This document shows, piece by piece, positions 38,400 to 51,256 of a stretch of 64,000 nucleotides of DNA; within the stretch, counting starts at the first letter, position 1; every line of letters starts with the position of its first letter. The stretch comes from Chrysemys picta bellii (Eukaryota), in assembly GCF_011386835.1 (NCBI RefSeq), contig NC_088801.1, positions 47,554,001 to 47,618,000 on the forward strand, read 5' to 3'. Position numbers and translations under genes: made by a program. The notes under the pieces are model-generated. The model made no database searches. It was given only the letters and a program-made list of their open reading frames with translations, and was not told the origin of the DNA.

Positions 38400-39870
38400 G
38401 GCTCTTTTCAGCTTAGTCTTAAACAAACAAACCAGAGCTGGTTCAAGAGGTAACTATAATCTGAGTAATAGTATCTGCTTACTACAGAAAACTGAGGGAG
38501 AATTGTTGAATAAGATGGACTATTAAGGGATTAAAGAGGCAAATGAAGGAAGATAAAGACTATACAGAGAAGCGAAATGATTTCTGTGAATAAGTCTTTA
38601 TCATAGAGGATGTTAGAGAGCTACCTGCCCCTTATTCTTTTTAAGTAATGAAGTTCAAGCACTGTCAGACATTTGAGGTATCAAAAAAGAAAGAGTTGGA
38701 ACAAAATAACTAAAGGTATGAATTTCAACAAATTTAGTTATTTCAGTTCCATTTACTTCCACTTACTGTGCAGACAAGCCCTAACTAGTCTCAGGGTAAG
38801 AGGTAAACTTGCTAAGAGGCAGAAAACAAAGAGCCAAATCCTGCAAAGATTTACCCATGTACCTACTTATATGAGCAGTCACATTGAAGTGAAGTAGAAT
38901 TACTCACATGGATAAATATTTGCAGGACTGGGCCCAAAAATGTAATAGGAAATTATCAATTTTTTTACATGGCAAAACATCAATAGGGTGCCCTAAGAAT
39001 CTGTTTTTATGCTGGTATAGTTGAATATATTTGTTAATGATCTGGAAAACACAGTGAACAGTGATATGGCAAATTTCATGGATTACACAAAATTGTTTAA
39101 ATTAGCCAAGTCTAGGGAAGACTTTGAAGAATTCCATACACAGCTAACAAAGCTACATAAATGGAGAGCATGCAAGGCAAAATTCATTGCTGATGAATGC
39201 CAGGTGATGAAGCAGTAATTTGAACAGATCTTACATATACTGGGTTCTAAATCTCACTGTGTCAACTCAGGAAAAAACCTTTGTGTCATCATGGACAGTC
39301 TAACAAAAATCTCTGCTCAGGGTGCAGTTTCAGCCAAAAAAGTAAACAAAAAATTAGGATTTATTAAAATAATACTGAAAATATGATAATGAATCTTATG
39401 ATTCATTATTTTGAATCACTGGTGTTATCCTTACTCTGAATGCTGTGTTTAATTCTGGTTACTCCCTCCAAAAAAGAAATATAGTAGAAATAGAAAGAGA
39501 TTATTCCTAAATGTAACAGTAATGAACATGACAGTAGGCATAGAAAGACTTCTGTATAAGGAGACATTGTAAAGATTGGGATTGATATTTTTAGAGAGAA
39601 AATGACTAATGGGGAGAAGTGAGAGGTATATAAAATAATGAATAGTATAGATAATAATAGTGTAGAAAAGGTAAACTGAGCAGTCCTCTTTAACCTTTCC
39701 CTTAGCACAAGGAAAAGGCACATGAAATGAACTTAAAAAAAAAATGGAAGGTCTCATGGAAGAAGTTAGTTGTGAGAAGGGACTGCGAACTAGGATAGGC
39801 CAATGGAAGGAGGCTGTTTTAAATATATGAACGAGCATAAAAAAGGCATAACATTGTGAATGGGACAAAT
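38400..39870 (+). mobile_element. Very old CR1 remnant (pre-RT segment, MITE interruption at ~38830-38935, RT C-terminus and 3' region)
   Basis: NIFVNDLENTVNSDMANFMDYTKLFK (degenerate FADDTKL) at 39021-39218, with downstream CR1-like motifs. Confidence 0.75.
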
Positions 39871-39883
39871 AGATCCCCTAGAT

Positions 39884-40145
39884 CAGGGTTTCTCAAACAG
39901 GGGTCGCCCCTTGTATAGGGAAAGCCCTTGGTGGGCCGGGCCGGTTTGTTTACCTGCCCCATCCGCAGGTCCGGCCGATCGCGGCTCCCACTAGCCGCGG
40001 ATTGCTGCTCCGGGCCCATGGGAGCTGCTGGAAGCGGCGGCCAGTAAGTCCCTTGGCCCGCACAGCTTCCAGCAGGTAAACAAACGGTCCCGGCCCGCCA
40101 GGGGCTTTCCCTATACAAGTGGCGACCCCTGTTTGAGAAACCCTG
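39884..40145. mobile_element. hAT MITE (CAGGGTTTCTCAAACAGGGGTCGCC family)
   Basis: Perfect ~25-bp TIRs and a perfect 8-bp TSD CCCTAGAT (39876-39883, 40146-40153). Confidence 0.95.
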
Positions 40146-40165
40146 CCCTAGATAGACTTTGCTGT

Positions 40166-40903
40166 CAGGGCCGGCTCCAGGTTTTTTACCGCCCGAAACA
40201 AAAAAAAAGGCATAATGCTGCCCCTTGAAAAGGGCCGCCCCAAGCACATGCCTGTCTTTATAATGGACTAGATTAGCGGAGGACTTGCTGGGATGGACTG
40301 AGGACTGGGGCGCACTGGCAGAGTTCTGCATTGGGCAGAGCTGAGTGGAAGGTCAGGTTGAAGGTTGTCACGGAGCCAAAAGATCTGCGCTCTGCCCCAG
40401 CTTTTAAACAGTCCCTTGGAGAAACCCAGTCCCCCAGTGGGTCACCATCTTCCTTAATTGTATGTCATGCAGCCTCAGTGCCTCCAATGCTGAGTCCTAG
40501 GGCTCCAGCACTCAGTTTCACCCCAGGAGCTCTGCCCAGCGAGTCCAACTGAGATGCTCGCTCTTGGTCAGCGACGTTATGTTCTTCACAGATGTAGCTT
40601 TAGCGAGTATTTGCAGTGACCCCAGGCACAGTAGGATTTATTAGTCGACTGTAAAACAGAAATGGGGTGTCCTTACATTACCATAGGCAGGGCTGGCTCC
40701 AGGGTTTTTGCCGCCCCAAGAGGCGGGGAAAAAAAAAAGCTGCAATCGGCAGCAGCTCCACCCCACCACTTCCTTCTTCGGCGGCAGGTCCTTCCCTCCG
40801 AGAGGGACCAAGGAACCCACCGCCGAAGAGCCTGAGGTGCCGCCCCTTCCCCTTGGCCGCCCCAAGCACCTGCTTGCTGGGCTGGTGCCTGGAGCCGGCC
40901 CTG
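40166..40903. mobile_element. Composite hAT unit: right-truncated MITE, ~430 bp unrelated DNA, then a complete MITE (40688-40903)
   Basis: The outer TIRs are flanked by TTTGCTGT (40158-40165) and TTTGCAGT (40904-40911). The inner MITE has no TSD of its own. Confidence 0.7.
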
Positions 40904-42134
40904 TTTGCAGTATCCTTGGGCTGGTTCCAACTCCCACTGAAATCCATAGGAGATTTAAAGGGAGCTGGATTGGGACTCTTGTGAGTGTTGAACAGTTGCT
41001 AATTTCTACCACCATTGGGTGCATTTCAGTGGTGGGTGAAATGGTTTCTTGACATAAAGCTTTTTGGTATTCTGTAGTTTGTAACATGCTTTGAGAACTA
41101 TTAAGCCACATGAAGAATATGTTTTTATTGTGGAACAAATTGTATTAAATTATGCTTGGATTATTTGTTAAATGAACAATGTTGTTAAATATTAAACGGC
41201 AGAATATTGAGCATTATATCTGTCACAGATAGAAAAACTACTCACTGTGTGTTGATTAATACAACTCATTCATTGGGTTATAGTCCCACCACCTTCCAGG
41301 AATTGTCACAAATCCATCTCCTGTCTCTGGGTGCTAGGTTTGCATTTGCAGTTTTGCTTTGTAAGAATTTGTGTGTTCCCATAACTCCTTGCAGGCTATT
41401 CAAATGGAATAGAGAGAATATAATGGGGCATTGGATGGCTATTATCAGGACTGATACTCTTATGAAGAGGTAAAGGACTGCAGATTGAAGGCAGAATGAA
41501 CTAGAGTATCCAAGACAGTGAACTTTAGAGGAAGAGTAGAATAATGAGATGGGGGGGCGGGGAAGGACAGAAAGGGAGAAGCTTCATGGTTTGTAGGAAT
41601 CATGGACTGATAGAAGGTTAAGGGCAGAAGAAAAGGGAGGGAAAGTGCTAAAAAGTGTATGGTCAATAATTGAGGAGATGGCAGATGCTTAGGAAGATGA
41701 ATGAAACCGGGGTGGGAAGACAGATATGTGGGGGAGGGGAAAAAGATAAGTTGGGCAAGAGAACATGAAGAAGCAGCCATTCAGGAGAGTCTGACTACTG
41801 AGTCAATTAATACAATGAATAGTTCAGCTTGGGGAGGAGCAGAGTTTGACAAGAGGGGCGACTGTTGAATTGAATAACATTTTGTCCAAGTCAAGGTGGC
41901 AACCTTACCTTCATCACCAGCAAGAACTGTTATAGCCTTCCAGATATTCTTCTTTGTTACAGATCACAATATAAATCGTTCACAGACTTGGGTGTAAGGA
42001 GTAGGCCAGTTATTTACAACCATGATGAAAAGTTTACAATACTTTCTGGAACTAACTCTGGTACACAAGGAACATTGGTATGCCTGCCAGAAGTCTGAAA
42101 ACATTACACTCTACTGAAAATGGATATGTTATAG

Positions 42135-42560
42135 GAACATAAGATTTACCATACCTGATCAAACAGTGGTCTGTATAATCAGGTACCCTGCATCCAACAG
42201 TGGTCAGTGTCAGATACTTCAGAGGAAAGTACAAGCTTCCCTGAAGTGGGCAATTATGGAACACAGGGCCAGCTCCAGGTTTTGGCCGCCCCAAGCAGCC
42301 AAAACAAAAAACGAAAAAAAAAGCTGCGATCGCGATCTGCGGCGACAATTCGGCAGGAGGTCCTTCGCTCCCAGGAGGAGTGAGGGACCGTCCGCTGAAT
42401 TGCTGCCGAATACCTGGACGTGCCGCCCCTCTCCGGAGCGGCCGCCCCAAGCACCTGCTTGATAAGCTGGTGCCTGGAGCCGGCCCTGATGGAATAACTT
42501 GTCCATAGGGGAATTTTCTTCGTAACCCCAGGCAGAAGTTGGTTGGCCCACTCTTAACAT
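42135..42560 (-). mobile_element. Old CR1 3' end interrupted by a hAT MITE
   Basis: GAACATAAGA...CCATAC...GATCAAAC...ACAGTGG...CAGATACTTCAGAGGAAAG resembles a reversed CR1 3'UTR. Confidence 0.6.
42264..42488. mobile_element. hAT MITE, same family as 25049, opposite orientation
   Basis: TIRs CAGGGCCAGCTCCAG / CTGGAGCCGGCCCTG and TSD ATGGAACA / ATGGAATA (7/8). Confidence 0.92.
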
Positions 42561-43430
42561 TGTTTTTAGAAGTCCAAAACAATTTTTGTTCTGCTCAGTC
42601 CCTGCAAATATTTTTTTGTCTTATTCCAAGGAAGGTGATTGCATAGCCTTCCTAGTTCTTTTCATTTTTGTTGTTCTCCTCTCTGTCTATTCATTATCTT
42701 CTTAAATTTATGGGACTTTTTAAAAAGCAATTATATAGGAGTTGTTGTTGATATGAATTGGTAGAAAGTACTACTGAAAGATAGAATCTATATGAAAGGA
42801 ATAATAAAAGAATGTTGTAACCATATGATGGATAATTAGATAACCCTAAGGTGTGTCAGTGTGGCTGCAAAACAACCTTCTCCAGACACTGCTGAAGAGA
42901 GCGAGAGCAGAGTTTGGCTTAAAATGTTAAGATAGTGTAGAACCATTAAATGAACAAGTTGAAATTGGCTTAAGGGAAATCAGTTTTGTCTCAGTGATTC
43001 CTATTTTACTTACATGCTGCACAATTCAAGATATAATTAGATCTAATCCTTTATCCAGTCATTATACTAGGATAACTACTAAGAGTTTGCACAAAACCTC
43101 AAGACGATTTATTTGGGACCCAGAGAAATATAATATTAATGCTGTGATTGTGTATATTTTATATCAGGGGTTCCCTCCCTAGACTGTCCATTTTGTACAT
43201 TATGTCTATTTTCAATCCCCCCCACCCCCACCCCCCCCCAAAAAAACATTTCACACTTGGAAGCTTTAATTCACTTTTGTGTGCACTGCAGGGAGGTATT
43301 ATCCAATGGTGAGAGCAGAGGCTTGGAGTCAGAATAATTTTGTTCCCAGCTCTGCCATTGACTTGCTCTGTAGGCATAACACTTGACTTTTCAGTGTTAG
43401 TATACCCATCAGTTCTTTGGGAATCTTGTA

Positions 43431-43660
43431 CAGGTCTGATACATCTTACGCGCATTTAACATGTACGATTTCAACATTACACGGTCGGCAAAAACAAAAA
43501 AAAACAAAAAAAAAAAGAGAAAAATAACAATTTTAATACTATACCTGTAGTGTGGGCAATTTCGCCCGCCATTGAACTCAATGGAATTTTGGCTATATGC
43601 GGTTTTCACTTTACGCGCTAACCGTGGAACGGAACCCCCGCATAAGATGAGACAGACCTG
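43431..43660. mobile_element. Tc1/mariner (pogo/Tigger-like) MITE
   Basis: 22-bp TIRs matching at 18/22 (CAGGTCTGATACATCTTACGCG), TA on both sides, and a CpG-rich interior. Confidence 0.8.
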
Positions 43661-44934
43661 TAATTCCTTCCTTCCATAGAGCTGTTGTGTGGTCCAATTA
43701 ATTGATGTTTCCAAGATATTCTAACATCTACTCATAAAAGGCACTATATGAGTGCAAAGTATTATATGATATTGTATCTGTACACAGTATGCACTTTGAA
43801 TCGCAGGTCAAGTGGCTTTTGAATATTACTTTATCCTTGGATTTTTACCTCCAGTGGAGTATCTGGTTGGTCACATATGACTATGGGAGAGTTCATCTGA
43901 ATGACATTGGTCAAAATATTTAGTTACTTAATGCTTTGTACATGTGCCTACAGGTTTTATTATAGATGGATTTTTATAAATCATTAGATGTTTTCTCACC
44001 GCCAATCTAAATGGCCAGTTCTTAATCATTTTACTGCTTTTTTTTTAAAAAAAAGGAAATAGACAGTACTTCACAATGTTGATGGTGGGATCAAATAATG
44101 ATGGTCACATAAATATTACTACAATATGTGCATTCTAAATGTATTAACAATTGCTAGGAGCAATGAAATCACAGAAAGCCAGACATTTATTTTCTTCCTG
44201 GACTTGTTTTACCTGCTTAATATTTTGTCATTCCCCCTAAACTAGTCCCAATCCAACTGTATTGATTTATCTGTTAGAGTAATTGAAATTTGCCCTGTGT
44301 ACTGTCCATGTTCATAGTCAGCTGGTTTCAGTTCTTTGTTCCCAAGCATAGTCTGATGATTATGGGAAAGAAACAGAAAAAGCAATTGCTGACAGCTACT
44401 ATTAATGTGCTTGGGTCAAGTACTTAGCAGTAGTGTGACAAAGGCCCAGGATCATAATTTCTACCATCAATAACATATTAGTTGACACTAAGGGCAAAGC
44501 ATGAAGAATTCAGCAGATTCCATGGAACATCATAGCCAGCATGGCAGCCAAGGAGAAAATCTATGAAGATCATGAAAATTTGTGAAGGTAGAGTCATAGT
44601 GGTAACACAATTATTTTGAGTGTTGCTTTTATTGCCGTACAACTGACACATTTTACTGTTGTAAACTATTGCTTTCAGTAGTTTTCAATGGACAGTTGAT
44701 ATTAGCAAATCCATATTTTATATCGGAGTCAGTGCACTCGGTAAAAGTAACTAAAACAAAACTACACATCTTTCAGATGCCTGGACATGATATAGAATTC
44801 CCATACCACTTCTATACAGGAAATACCCCCTATAAGGATTCACACACTATCTTCTAACATCATCTCTTCTCCTGTGATGTTCTCTTTTCCTGCCTCCTGC
44901 CACTTCCTATAATTTATTAATACTTATTTATTAT

Positions 44935-45050
44935 TTATTTTGTAGTAGTTCCCATAGGCCTCAGTCATGGTCAGAGCCCTATTGTGCTATGATCTGTATA
45001 AACCGATAAGGAGACATCATCCCTGCCTTAAAAAACTTGCAGTCTAAACT
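44935..45050 (-). mobile_element. L2-type 3' end fragment (similar copy at ~24960-25025)
   Basis: CCCTATTGTGCTATGATCTGTATAAAC...CCCTGCCTTAAAAAACTTGCAGTCTAA. Confidence 0.5.
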
Positions 45051-45261
45051 TCACAACTGGCATTCTGTCCTCATAACAAGGAAATAATGCAAACAATCTA
45101 CTTTAAGGGACCAATCCTGCACACCTTATTCACATCAGTAGTCCTACCAAAGACTAGGTTTGGTCTAGTGTGCTGTGATACTAAATCTACCAACTATTGA
45201 TGATGGTGAGGTGGCTCCAAACCCATATTATTTTGTAGTATTCTCGCTACTTACTTCAGGG

Positions 45262-45289
45262 GTGTGTGTGTGTGTGTGTGCGCGCACGC
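45262..45289. repeat. (GT)n(CG)n alternating purine-pyrimidine tract
   Basis: Read directly. Similar tracts lie at ~26482-26510 and ~5737-5760. Confidence 0.9.
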
Positions 45290-45340
45290 CCATCGATAGA
45301 TTTTACTCTATATTTCCTGGCATATTCCTGTAACAGTTAG

Positions 45341-45600
45341 TAGCAAATTCTGACAAGTGTCTCACCTGTCACAATGTCCTACTTTCATCATTTGATTCAT
45401 TGGAGCAACAGCTAGCAAATTCTGATGTATGACTGACACCTGCCAAAATTTACTACCTACTGCAAGATGAGAACTAGAGAAGATAGCAAATTCTAATAGG
45501 AGGAAGGTTCCTATCATAAATTGTTGCCTCCTGTATCAAGGATATAAATGGTAAAGATAGGAAATTCTGACAGGAAAGTGACACCCATCAGAATTTCCTA
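45341..45600. repeat. Array of four 41-43 bp palindromic repeats with 28-31 bp spacers
   Basis: TAG(C/G)AAATTCT(G/A)A occurs at 45341, 45413, 45484 and 45558, each followed by its approximate reverse complement. Confidence 0.85.
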
Positions 45601-46034
45601 GAAGCAGCTTCCTTATTTTCCAACACAAACTGATAGTATCATCATATTTTGCTGCCAGGAGCAAATGCTGGCTGGGAGGCATTTTGTGATGTTACATCAT
45701 AGTTCTGAGTTAAATCTTTTTGATTCCATTGCTGAAAATGGGAACTGTAGCAATCTTATGCCACAAAACCTGACTCCTGGCACTAAACAATGAATGTAAA
45801 GTGGACTGGAGGGGTTAGGGGGGCCCTAGGAACATCTTAACGTTATGTGTAATAAAGCTGCAGGTGGCTGAATCCACAGGAAAAACAAGGTTTTGTTTTG
45901 TGACAGTGTTGAGTTGTTTGCATGCAAGATCTGTTTTATTGGTATAAAAAGGAAAGAAGCATTAGTTCTTACCATGTATTAATTGTTGGTAGGTTTTAAA
46001 TATTGGCTAGATTTGGGGAAGGTAAATAATAAAT

Positions 46035-46104
46035 AATCTATGGAAGAAAAACACTAAATAAGAGACTATATATTATTTTATATAGTGTTTTTCTTCCATA
46101 GATT
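46035..46104. repeat. Perfect 22-bp inverted repeat with a 26-nt loop
   Basis: AATCTATGGAAGAAAAACACTA (46035-46056) / TAGTGTTTTTCTTCCATAGATT (46083-46104). Confidence 0.95.
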
Positions 46105-46264
46105 TTTTCCAACTACTTTATAAGGGGAGGGTAAGTATCATACACATTTTAAAGTTGAGGAAAGTGACTTGGTGGCGATGATACAGGTCTGCCACAAACT
46201 AGGAATAGAACATAGGTGTCTTCATTTCCATCCTCATTCCTTAGCAACGAGACCACAGTGCCTC
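46083..46264 (-). mobile_element. Degenerate CORE-SINE (MIR-like)
   Basis: GGTAAGTATCATACACATTTTAAAGTTGAGGAAA...CTAGGAATAGAAC...AGACCACAGTGCCTC follows the reversed MIR layout. Confidence 0.5.
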
Positions 46265-48167
46265 GAAGTCAGAGAAAACCACGTAATTAGACGTTCACAG
46301 CTCAGTGGGATATAATATCCGCAGTTAGGAAAATAAAAACAACACTGTGAAGTGCTAGAAGAGTGTTGCAATTTAATTTGAAGTTTTCAAGGAAACTGTA
46401 ATCAACAAAGTGATGTGGTTTTACTAGATTTAAAAAAAACAAAAAAACAAAAAAAAAAACAAAAAAACACTGCATCACCCATGTCCACCCCTAACTAAAC
46501 AATCTGTGATGTGGAAGTTTTGTAAACATGGTCTTTATTTTAAAGATTCCCAGACTCCCCCAAGCGGATAACTAGAAAATATATCAGCTGAATATATTGA
46601 AAGACTCCTGTCTATTATTAGTATAGTAAACAAGCAATACCCCCTCCAAAAAAAGCTGAACTCCGATTTATGTCAAGTTTCCCCATTACATGCGTTGTAA
46701 CGAGTGTTCTTTTCAAGAGAGCAAGATTGTTTTCCTCACCCAACGTGTTTTTACGACCCTGCCCTTATTCAGTTTCCCCTTACACGGGGGCGTCTGATCG
46801 GTTTAGGAAGCCTGGATCCGTTTGTAGCCGGATAAAAGGTAACACTTTGCTAGTACGTAGAATAGTCTCAGTTTTGTGGAGCGAGATGTCTGGTACCTAT
46901 TGTGTATTTAGGAAGTGATTGGCATGGGAGTAGTAGGAGCATGGACCTAGGTTTCGTTTTGTCCAACTTCAGTGATTCAGTGAGTGACTTGAAGTGTACA
47001 GGGATTTTCCCAATTCTACCCCACGGGGGGGGGGGGGGGGGGAGGGGGGCAGGAGAACCCAGAGTGACATTTGCCCTATGCCCAGGCACAGACATCGCTC
47101 TGAAATCCTTATTAACCAATTCAGGCTGCCCTGAGAGGGAGATAAAGCTCTCCGCACATCCACTGAAGGACTGGTCCCCAGGCTGCCCGCTGGCTGCTAT
47201 TGATCCCTGTAAGTGCCTGCTAATGAGTCCCGTATACACTCCCAAGGAGCCATGCTCAGAGGAGCTAGAGGGGAGAAGAGCAGCACGCACGCGGAACGCC
47301 CCCGCTCCGAGCCGAGCAAGTGCCGGGCGTTTAGCCCTGATCGCCTGCCCGGGACTAGCGGTCGCGGCCTGAGCCAAGGCCAGCCCTTCTTCGGGGCTCG
47401 CTGGGTTGGGGGAGCCCTGCCCCTCAGCCACGGTGCTAGAGCTGCACGGTGCAGGGGGGAGCAGCCCAGGGAAGAGGACGGGGCAGCGGCGGCGGAGAGC
47501 TCCCTTGTCACCTGCAGCTGCCAGTGGCGGGGCTCGACAGAGGCAGCAGAGCCCAGTGCCAGACCCCCCCTAGCGTGCCGGGGGGGGGGGGGGGGGCTGA
47601 TCCCTGCTCTGGCTGGCTGCCCCGTCCACAAATCCCGGACTAACCAGAGACTAGACTAGAAAGCGCCCCCCTGATCAGAGCCCTGCCCGGCGGAGAGCAG
47701 CGGGCCGGGAACACTCTCGGGAGGGAAGCCGCTGTCTCAGGCAGGGCTGCTGTTGGGCTAGGGATTTGCTGCAATTGATGCGAAGGGTTCCCAGCCAGCC
47801 AGGGCGAGGGGCCGCCTCTTCTGTTTCCACTTTCCCGTTCCCACCGCCTGGTTTCCTTCGCTCCTTCTCCTTTACCTGCGCTGCGGCCGCCTGGGTCCCC
47901 TGCCCGCCTCCCGCTGCGGCTGGAGAAGTGGGGCCGAGACAATAGCCCGCTCCTGGGGCTGGGGGGGGGGGGAGCTGGGGGTGGCGGGAAGCGGCGTGTG
48001 ACAGCTGTACTCCTCTGACAGCTCCCGGGATCAGCCTAGTGGCTCCCTGCCATTGGCTCAGTGCAATGGACCGGCAACGCTGCGCGGTATAACAACACTA
48101 TGCCTGTGAGAGGCAGCAGCTCAGACTCCTTCAGCAAAGCCACGGAGATGCTGCTGCCGCTGCGCCG

Positions 48168-48190
48168 CCTCCTCCTCCTCCTCCTCCTCC
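48168..48190 (+). repeat. (CCT)7 trinucleotide repeat in the presumptive 5'UTR
   Basis: Seven CCT plus CC, preceded by CTG/CCG triplets. Confidence 0.9.
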
Positions 48191-48435
48191 AGCCAGCGCT
48201 GCCCTGAGACCGCGGGAGACTCTGGACCGTGCCCCCGGGCTCCTGCAATTCCTGTGTGTCTCTCCCGCCCCCGCAGCCCGCGAGGGGAGGGGACCGAGCT
48301 CTGCCAGGCGGAGGAGTTGGGCGGCTGGGTTAATTGCCGAGATTAGCCGGAGGTGGTGTACATGCCGGTGGGGCTCTGCTTCCTCCGATCCCCTCAGCAC
48401 AGCACCGTCACTCCGCCCGCCCTGGGTCTGCCTGA

Positions 48436-48714
<279 letters not shown>

Positions 48715-51256
48715 TAGGTAGTGTGTCGCTGGCGCTTGTGGTGTAATGGGGACATGGTCCCATCTCCAGTGGCACGGGTGGTTGAATGACTGTTTCTAGA
48801 GCACTTCTTGGGATAGGAGTTCCCACTAATTTTACATATTCACTCGGACCCCCCGTGGGCAGGACTTTAGCCATCCCAAAGAGTTCCCTGCATGTTCTTT
48901 TAGCTTTCTCCGATTTGGGGGTCTGTGAATAGGGATCTCAGAAACCCAACCTGGAAAGGGCATGCAGGCTGCATGGGTGGGTGAGGTGTCACTTTCAGTC
49001 CTTTAACCTAGGATTGCAGAGTCTTTAACAACCTGGAAACTTACCTGGTGATGCTCCCAACACACACAGCTCAGTAAAATGGTGTGGGTCTCCAGTCTGG
49101 AATCGAGTATGATAGGTGATTTCATCTATCCATGTCTATGCCAATTAGAAAGTCTTTGGTTTTTAGAAAGTAAGGGAAGAGACAGAAAGAAACACTTGTT
49201 TGAGGCCTGAACTTCCTGAGCAGGGAGAGTCAGTTGTTCAGGAACGACTTCAGAATCAATCTCATTGGTAGTACAGACAGGCTTAAAAGGTTTTAACAGG
49301 ATCTGCTTAGGAGTCTTGGTTAGATACACTGGAAAGTCTTGGTTCATAGTCTGTGTATTAAGATTATATTTATATAAAATGTGCAGTACTTCATGTATTG
49401 GTTCGGCATCTCTTCAGGTTCCAGTAGTTTTGATGACTTGTTTGTGCTCAATGTATTTTGGTTTCTGGACTTAGCGGATATGAAGACTTATAGTGTGGGG
49501 AGATTGGAAGGATGAAGTCCATGCTTACAAGTGCCACAATGCCCAGGAAAATATGGGTAATGCAGGAACACTACAGTTGAGTGAGTTACTTCATGTAACA
49601 GCTCAAGGAAAATGAACCAAAGTATAAGCAGATGTCTGCAGGATACCACAGAACTGGAAGTAGGACTTAAACAATATTGTTTATCACTCTTCTCCACCAC
49701 CTTATTCTAAATTTCCTTTTGTTAAAATGGAACAGCACTTGTTCACTGTATACTTCCCTGGAACACATGACCTGTATTAACATTTGCGAAAGTTGGCAAG
49801 CTTGCAGCTTCTCCCAAACAAAGAGATTAAGACAAGCTTTTGAGCCAAGTCATAAAAATAGTAACTACTACAAGAGTATCTGAAACTGTCTTTGAAGGGC
49901 TTCTGATGTTGGAAAATTAATGCAACAGTTATTTCAGTAGTATATACTTTACAGTCTTCTTATTGGGGAAGTATCGTATTCCTTGAAATTAAACGGATAA
50001 TGGTAGAATTCTTGTGATTGCAGGCAATACACATATTTAGTGGCTATGGCTGCAAAATCAAAAATCCAGTATAGAAATGTTTGACAAATTGAAAATTTGG
50101 TACATATATATTCACTATATTAAACTGACTATTGAATGGAGGAAAGATGTGTCAGGCAAGATTAATTGATGAAAAGTCTGCTACAACTTTTGAACTGTGT
50201 GTTTACGGAGTAATACCTATAATTTATACAACCTCAGTTGTACTATAGTCTCTTCTCTTGAATATCTGACAACCTCCTTTTTAATGCTTATGTAATAAAT
50301 AGCTTATAAAATCAACAATTCTGTTTATCTTAAATTCAAGTAATTAGTAACTAAAATAATGTTGGAAAGAAAGCAGATGTGTTTAATTTAGTAATTTCAG
50401 ATGAAGTGAATTGCATAGGGTTTAGTTATTTTCATTCTGAAAGTAAATGTAAAGTTACACTGATATTTGGCAAGATACTCACATACAAGAGAATTAAGTA
50501 ACAAATATGCTATTTATTAAATGAATTGCTTTTAAAGAATTTAATGTAAAACTTTAAACCTAAACTATCCCTTTTATCATACTCAACTTGGAATATAACT
50601 GTAAAATAATTATCCAGTAAAAATGTTCCTAGTTTTTTTAAAATGGAAAATTAAATTCTTGATTTCAGATTCTGTATTCTTCATAATACATTCCTTAACA
50701 TATGAAACAAATGACATAAAGTATAGATACCCGGAGTAATATTTTCTCTGAGTAATTTCAAATTAAAATAATATTTAGCTGTGATCTAATCTGGTTTGTG
50801 TATATAAGAAGGATTTTTAAAGTTCATTTATATTATGAAGGAATTAAAGCACTATAAATAATAAGGAAAAGCTGCAATAACTCTACCTCATGCTCTGAAC
50901 AATAATGTACATTTTACTCAGATTCTGTTTGCAAATCAAACATTAAATAATTTCACAGAGAATCAATCACTTTGAATATAAATGGACTTCATTAACATGT
51001 TTAATGTAAATGTTTGTTTTAAGGCAAATTCTATATTATGGCCTTGGGAGTTTTCATAAGAATACACTGTCTTCTATTGTAGTCTGATGTCCAGCCCTCC
51101 CATTCCCACCTAGCCTCCTTATATGTGATGGGATGGGCACAATCCGTTTTTAACATGTAAAGGATACAGCCCGTGTAAGCAGAGCTGAAGCATACACCTT
51201 TCTATTTTGCTCTAAGTCATTCAGTTCATTGTCATTTACACCTCGAACCCAAAAGC

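Follow-up and report, generated by a model that had tools for sequence, protein, structure and literature searches.

A four-unit array of imperfect palindromes upstream of ZNF804A in the turtle Chrysemys picta bellii, a candidate cluster of protein-binding sites

The locus

The window, by which we mean the whole 64-kb stretch of Chrysemys picta bellii DNA that was analysed, contains no N stretches and carries the first coding exon of ZNF804A, with its ATG at 48490. The peptide specified by this exon matches 131 proteins of the family, several of which are 100% identical over 37 residues. One full-length match (P0016) carries Pfam PF27597 [ZNF804A_beta], and its gene spans 334 kb. Two of the matches are short ORFs which run from exon 1 into the intron; they lie on contigs of 958 and 1439 bp, neither of which reaches as far upstream as the region of interest here. 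An exact look-up of five ORFs of the window returned no record.

Upstream of this gene lies a regular array of four palindromic units (45341–45600; Table 1). Its end is 2.89 kb from the ATG, in agreement with the distance of approximately 3 kb given in a preliminary description of this DNA; the CpG-island promoter of the gene lies 1.4 kb downstream of it. In the portions of the literature on the ZNF804A promoter and enhancers which were available to us nothing addresses the array, and a literature search with the arm words recovered PCR primers only.

Three GC-rich stretches are situated at 39819–40331, 40641–41138 and 42052–42582. Their ORF translations share peptide motifs (for example GPAPGTS..SRCLGRP) and a single interspersed repeat is probably the source of all three; the block of 56% GC at 40–41 kb is therefore not a second CpG island.

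Anatomy of the array

The units measure 41, 43, 43 and 43 bp and are separated by spacers of 31, 28 and 31 bp, which results in a period of 72, 71 and 74 bp. In coordinates, lengths, spacers and period this is exactly the structure of the preliminary description, as are the perfect 13-nt arms of unit 4. Words of the TAGCAAATTCTGA type begin at 45341, 45413, 45484 and 45558, with 0, 0, 1 and 1 mismatches respectively, and each of them opens an imperfect palindrome of 41–43 bp. The repeated word reaches 3–4 nt further to the left than the 13-mer, and the copies thus make up a family of 17 nt. A further, degenerate copy which lies out of phase downstream of unit 4 is not significant on its own, nor was it recovered by a profile of the units.

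Table 1. Coordinates of the array, of its parts and of neighbouring features within the window
Feature	Position	Strand	Observation
Left flank	44600..45246		19 substitution sites
Low-divergence block holding the array	45247..45791		1 substitution site (45500 G>A, inside unit 3), 0 indels among four turtles
Right flank	45792..46400		10 substitution sites
Unit 1	45341..45381	+	41-bp imperfect palindrome, exact left-arm 13-mer; 15/20 arm positions complementary; RNA fold z -1.9
Unit 2	45413..45455	+	43-bp imperfect palindrome, exact left-arm 13-mer; 13/21 arm positions complementary; fold z +1.0
Unit 3	45484..45526	+	43 bp, the most diverged unit; left arm with 1 mismatch, right arm with ~5; identity to the others outside the left arm 43–53%; fold z -2.0
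Unit 4	45558..45600	+	43-bp palindrome, perfect 13-nt arms, 17-nt loop; fold z -5.1 (RNA), -5.5 (DNA)
Conserved 17-nt word AGnTAGCAAATTCTGA(Y), candidate binding site	45338..45354, 45410..45426, 45481..45497, 45555..45571	+	family at 76–100% identity, spacing 72/71/74
Fifth, degenerate, out-of-phase word copy AGGAGCAAATGCTG	45657..45670	+	86% identity
CpG-rich ZNF804A promoter region	47000..48900	+	GC 54–69%
ZNF804A exon 1, coding part	48490..48600	+	37 aa within ORF 48451–48717, then GT donor

When up to two mismatches are allowed the word has 11 matches in the 64-kb window, a number which none of 100 dinucleotide-preserving shuffles attained. Five of these lie inside the array, the fifth being the mirror copy within unit 4. 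A cluster of binding sites should hold at least three copies of its word within a few hundred base pairs, above chance; here there are four copies, with no or one mismatch, within 230 bp, together with the inverted copy of unit 4. The four-unit array is real and above chance.

Over 19 candidate pairs, 79% of the cells are able to pair, versus 33–40% when the partner column is slid by one to three positions. Since pairing is so far above this slid-column control the palindromy of the units is genuine, and it is deeper than the 13-nt arms. Identity between entire units is 58–78%, and it is only in the 13-nt left arm that they are near-identical. Tandem Repeats Finder, with the score lowered to 30, reported nothing at 45341–45600. 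The periods of 71–74 bp correspond to 6.8–7.05 helical turns.

Uneven conservation between the units

The four periods were aligned with either the left or the right arm as anchor, and the mean pairwise identity was taken. This amounts to 92% in the left arm and 67% in the right arm, which upholds the earlier observation of near-identical left 13-mers beside right arms that have drifted. The loop follows with 33–56%, the spacers after the unit with 33–36% and the 12 nt preceding it with 32%, the random expectation from base composition being 26%; the unit interiors stand at 60–68%. Of the 43 aligned columns of the unit, 13 belong to the left arm, and 11 of these are invariant; in the remaining 30 the number is 8 (Fisher 7e-4), and the difference holds after correction for choosing the best 13-column window (P 0.011). 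Where the whole period is considered, such a concentration of invariant columns was seen in none of 200,000 simulations (P below 5e-6). The word is thus conserved above the surrounding DNA between paralogous units; between species the power suffices for the block as a whole only.

The copies of a minisatellite ought to be alignable over their whole period. In this array the spacers show 32–36% identity, and the best same-strand pair, spacers 2 and 3, reaches z 2.2 (p 0.04, approximately 68% with gaps). Spacer 1 resembles the reverse complement of spacer 3 to a similar degree (z 2.3). Both results are lost on correction for 24 comparisons, so that the sequence which spacers 2 and 3 had been said to share is marginal, and the spacers appear to be essentially unrelated to one another. 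Because the left-arm word is intact and the spacers are at the random level, this pattern cannot be the product of a 72-bp tandem duplication that decayed neutrally and uniformly.

We looked for covariation by shuffling the right arms among the units. Pairing was 77% after shuffling versus 79% before, and compensatory pairs are not in excess. As an exchange of right arms leaves pairing unchanged, it is the sequence of the left arm which has been kept and not the capacity for hairpin formation.

Folding

In single-strand folding compared with shuffles only unit 4 is significant (Table 1). The units had been presented as hairpins: palindromic they are, with only the last of them folding better than its shuffles. 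The two weaker hairpins said to follow the array did not hold up, since 45621–45654 and 45655–45690 fold at the chance level (z 0.05 and -0.34). The region 45336–45610 can be folded as one long imperfect hairpin (z -2.9), the outer units 1 and 4 pairing with each other and likewise the inner units 2 and 3.

Copy number and neighbouring repeats

Eight organisms share between 54 and 93% of the 31-mers of 44000–46900. For four of them, all related turtles, genome-scale contigs (approximately 2 Gb each, word depth 6–36) were aligned to 44600–46400 at a likeness of at least 80%. Across 45332–45819 there is exactly one contig per genome in all four turtles and in every bin. Many more are attracted by 44905–45148 and 46003–46185, in pieces down to 41–67 bp at 80–85% likeness; since neighbouring repeats of such length are picked up, the method is able to detect dispersed repeats of the size of a unit. 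No paralogue of the array was found at 80% likeness or above in the four turtle genomes, and no further copy within the 64-kb window. Based upon the single covering contig per genome, the array is not a recognisable repeat family and is single-copy at a likeness of at least 80%, a threshold at which a family older than approximately 20% divergence falls outside detection. The multiple dispersed copies which mark a transposon or MITE are accordingly lacking at this likeness.

Units 1 and 4 constitute a 21-nt inverted pair (81%). The only direct duplication flanking them is a bare TA, which carries no information. A search of 43500–47000 gave no outer inverted repeats, and no target site duplication (TSD) was recognised. 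Pfam analysis of nine surrounding ORFs revealed neither a protein family nor a transposase-like ORF. The preliminary description had likewise seen no terminal inverted repeats (TIRs), TSD or cas-like ORF, and had for this reason refrained from calling the array a CRISPR; we concur.

In one contig per genome 44998 is joined to 45867, which might be read as a nested insertion of 868 bp. This reading was rejected, as the sides of the joint are only 24 nt. Presumably, judging by eye, the multi-copy element at 44940–45060 continues unbroken past 44998, which also speaks against such an insertion.

Two repeats of the vicinity deserve description. That at 44905–45148 is dispersed and multi-copy, covered by many contigs at 80–90% likeness, and is preceded by a TATTATT-type simple repeat (44908–44940); we take it to resemble a common interspersed element of turtles and crocodilians. 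The other is an AT-rich palindrome of 78 bp (46031–46108) with 39-nt arms which are 87% complementary and have no spacer between them. It draws extra contigs in all four turtles and is thus multi-copy, it breaks the contigs of two of them (X12 and X18) at 46064–46078, and it gives sub-threshold matches to many miRNA models on both strands, the best of which scores 37.7 bits where the gathering score is 72. We probably have here a small repeat of foldback or MITE-like type.

Divergence among related turtles

The alignment of the four turtles contains 30 single-contig substitution sites over 1801 bp, after four places which derive from misplaced repeat copies had been set aside. They are unevenly distributed (Table 1), and all five indels lie in the flanks. 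The region 45295–45719 is devoid of CpG, and CpG transitions account for 6 of the 29 sites in the flanks. In simulations of the longest span with at most one site, P after scan correction is 0.007 when all sites are counted and 0.037 when CpG sites are left out, values which apply to turtles only approximately 2% diverged from the window and to a block of 545 bp delimited after the data had been seen. For the 260 bp of the array alone one site is observed versus approximately 4.8 expected (P ~0.05). The array lies within a block of approximately 0.5 kb which changes more slowly than its surroundings, a signal that is real and of low power.

At the right edge of this block a segment of 34 bp (45720–45753) is inverted relative to the window in the contigs of two of the turtles, X13 and X18. 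X12 probably shares the inversion, to judge from an unaligned gap of 28 nt, whereas X1 shows no such sign. At the ends of the inverted segment the inverted repeat is just 3 nt long (TTG...CAA). At 45262–45280 there is a (GT)9.5 microsatellite, after which the bases alternate between G and C, and the contigs of two turtles break there.

Comparison with known systems

Homotypic clusters of transcription factor sites and duplicated enhancers, such as the 72-bp repeats of the SV40 enhancer, also possess several equally oriented copies of a word, placed upstream of a promoter within a few hundred base pairs. The array further agrees with this group in its period of approximately 72 bp and in having a word conserved above the DNA between the copies. 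The SV40 repeats, however, are near-identical duplicates of the whole period, whereas the turtle array, a candidate cluster, has unrelated spacers and units which were originally palindromic.

Regularly spaced palindromic or inverted words, unrelated spacers and the potential to fold back are likewise properties of the sub-terminal arrays of cut-and-paste transposons and of MITE-derived repeats. Unlike these, the turtle array is single-copy (at 80% likeness or above in four genomes), showed no recognisable TSD, outer TIRs or transposase remnant, and diverges between species less than its flanks do. It may also be set beside the conserved non-coding elements found near developmental and neural genes, some of them exapted repeats: in common are a block of approximately 0.5 kb with few substitutions and no indels, the vicinity of the promoter of a neural gene, the absence of CpG and the richness in AT. 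Such elements are defined by deep conservation at the level of amniotes, whereas that of the turtle array is seen among turtles approximately 2% diverged.

The array had been titled CRISPR-like. As a visual analogy this is apt, in that partly palindromic repeats of approximately 40 bp alternate with unrelated spacers of approximately 30 bp; nothing mechanistic stands behind it. A CRISPR array proper was rejected: the repeats, which in CRISPR are near-identical, are here 58–78% identical, there are four units, neither cas genes nor a leader are present, and in place of a prokaryotic context we have a vertebrate nuclear locus 2.9 kb upstream of ZNF804A exon 1. Furthermore, unlike a CRISPR array, the turtle array is found at the same place in several turtle species.

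Metagenomes were scanned for left arms occurring twice with a period of 68–75 bp; this returned seven loci, which we reject as coincidences of the design of the pattern. Six are a 71-bp minisatellite and the seventh (L007) is a 75-bp AT-rich internal tandem repeat, and outside the 13-mer demanded by the scan they do not resemble the turtle periods significantly (lowest p 0.02 in 4 tests). On the two longest contigs (L004, 5886–6149, and L005, 3806–5059) the minisatellite has up to 17.7 copies at 92–96% identity and is located at syntenic places next to related ORFs (372 and 412 aa); these contigs are eukaryotic (host-derived). L007 is a contig of 2.2 kb with telomere-like CCCAATC/GGATTGG and CCCCAAAC repeats at both ends (1–90 and 2139–2246), and it looks like a ciliate-type minichromosome.

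Alternative explanations

Might the array be no more than what neutral decay has left of an ancient DNA transposon, of its interior or its sub-terminal region, or of a MITE-derived tandem array, the family consensus having carried repeated palindromic transposase-binding sites and the array having no function for the host? In several cut-and-paste superfamilies the sub-terminal regions normally repeat short palindromic words regularly between non-homologous spacers, and a family whose consensus already had this layout of binding sites and unrelated spacers would look like a repeat-spacer array even if it did nothing for the host. The long hairpin formed by 45336–45610 (z -2.9), the inverted pair of units 1 and 4, which is like the TIRs of a 260-bp foldback element, and the weak match between spacer 1 and the reverse complement of spacer 3 point in the same direction, as does the abundance of old repeats in turtle genomes, among them the multi-copy pieces which adjoin at 44905–45148. 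Against this, neither the four genomes nor the window yielded a second copy at 80% likeness or above, TIRs beyond the units and a TSD were not found, no transposase-like ORF is nearby, and the species differ less from one another here than they do in the flanks. In addition, we estimate that a family too old to be visible at 80% should show approximately 5–8 changes over the 52 left-arm positions, and 2 are seen. That the array is the interior of an ancient repeat had been raised in the preliminary description; the copy search bears on this down to 80% likeness. We regard the neutral relic as somewhat unlikely, and as the main rival to the explanation given below. It can be combined with a role in protein binding, the array then being an exapted transposon array.

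An ordinary old minisatellite, that is, a tandem duplication of approximately 72 bp which included a palindrome and decayed neutrally, would have to owe its intact left arm and low divergence to chance or to the local mutation rate. The regular period of 72/71/74 bp is as expected, the alignment of spacers 2 and 3 at approximately 68% with gaps is like the 60–68% of the unit interiors, the absence of CpG in 45295–45719 lowers the local mutation rate, and the comparison between species is of low power. This explanation is nevertheless improbable in our opinion, given 11 invariant columns in a window of 13 beside random spacers (P below 5e-6 over the period, 0.011 over the unit), periods too diverged for a young minisatellite and passed over by Tandem Repeats Finder, and a deficit of substitutions which holds without CpG sites (P 0.037). 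Less credible again is transcription of the array as a multi-hairpin or long-hairpin RNA, perhaps a precursor of small RNAs, which we hold to be very improbable. It could draw upon the strong 13-bp hairpin of unit 4 (z -5.1), the folding of the entire array, and faint sub-threshold matches on both strands to MIR821, a long plant-type hairpin (27 bits versus a gathering score of 249). In a structured RNA, on the other hand, each unit should be stable and should show compensatory change; three of the four hairpins are unstable here and compensatory changes are absent. The precursor of an animal miRNA requires longer stems than the 13–19 bp available within 43 nt. The MIR821 score, approximately a tenth of that required, is the best that the Rfam scan gave for the array, so that no family comes near its gathering score, and none of the 20 sequencing runs which share the stretch is on record as RNA, which is weak evidence and does not show silence. 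The multi-hairpin RNA put forward in the preliminary description thus finds no support.

A putative homotypic cluster of binding sites

Our preferred explanation, tentative and put at slightly below an even chance, is that an old local array has been kept as a homotypic cluster of binding sites within a constrained block of approximately 0.5 kb upstream of the ZNF804A promoter. We favour a reading based upon protein binding because the word is kept in all four units, pairing is not maintained and the block has few substitutions. The position upstream of the CpG-island promoter was likewise counted in its favour, and the inversion of 34 bp (45720–45753) inside the block was counted against it, since the block is thus not uniformly rigid.

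The ancestral array would have consisted of four periods of approximately 72 bp, each opening with a near-perfect palindrome of 43 bp with arms of up to 19 nt; its origin may have been a tandem duplication, or else an ancient transposon which already bore repeated binding sites. The spacers would later have decayed to the random level, and the loop and right arm to approximately 55–67% identity. The word of 13–17 nt at the left edge (AGnTAGCAAATTCTGA), 92% identical between the units, presumably escaped this decay and may represent the recognition site of a sequence-specific DNA-binding protein. Four such words in the same orientation could act jointly as a homotypic cluster, a candidate distal promoter or enhancer module which we infer to act on ZNF804A. 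The ancestral palindrome suggests a dimeric binder, for which the second half-site may now be dispensable.

As to the factor, the resemblances of the word to octamer/POU, FOX, C/EBP, Rel/NFAT and STAT/BCL6 sites presumably carry no weight, failing at core positions or fitting one unit only. MEIS/E-box likewise does not fit all four words and was rejected. CACCTG and TGACAG, listed in the preliminary description as motifs of the units, are present in some units only and are not conserved across them. The proposal made there of a phased protein-binding array is favoured by the conservation of the word in so far as protein binding is concerned; the phasing is loose.

A more specific version of the binding-site cluster would make the four words a phased platform for one protein with a site of 13–17 nt, derived from the sub-terminal array of a transposon now extinct and since retained to regulate ZNF804A in a lineage-specific manner, the second halves of the palindromes having become redundant. 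A multi-zinc-finger protein or a domesticated transposase would be a candidate binder. We consider so detailed a scenario improbable. If true, it would offer a traceable passage from a transposon binding-site array to a host enhancer, with built-in evidence as to which half-site matters.

Should the array be only the relic of an old repeat, it is ordinary. The present evidence leans towards constraint, thinly so because it is drawn from turtles approximately 2% apart. Provided that the word is a genuine binding site, the array would be a compact and directly testable regulatory element beside a neural gene, with four natural copies of the site and their four decayed mirror copies as internal controls. 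It would then show how a repeated palindrome, whether born of duplication or of a transposon, has been whittled down to the half that selection needs.
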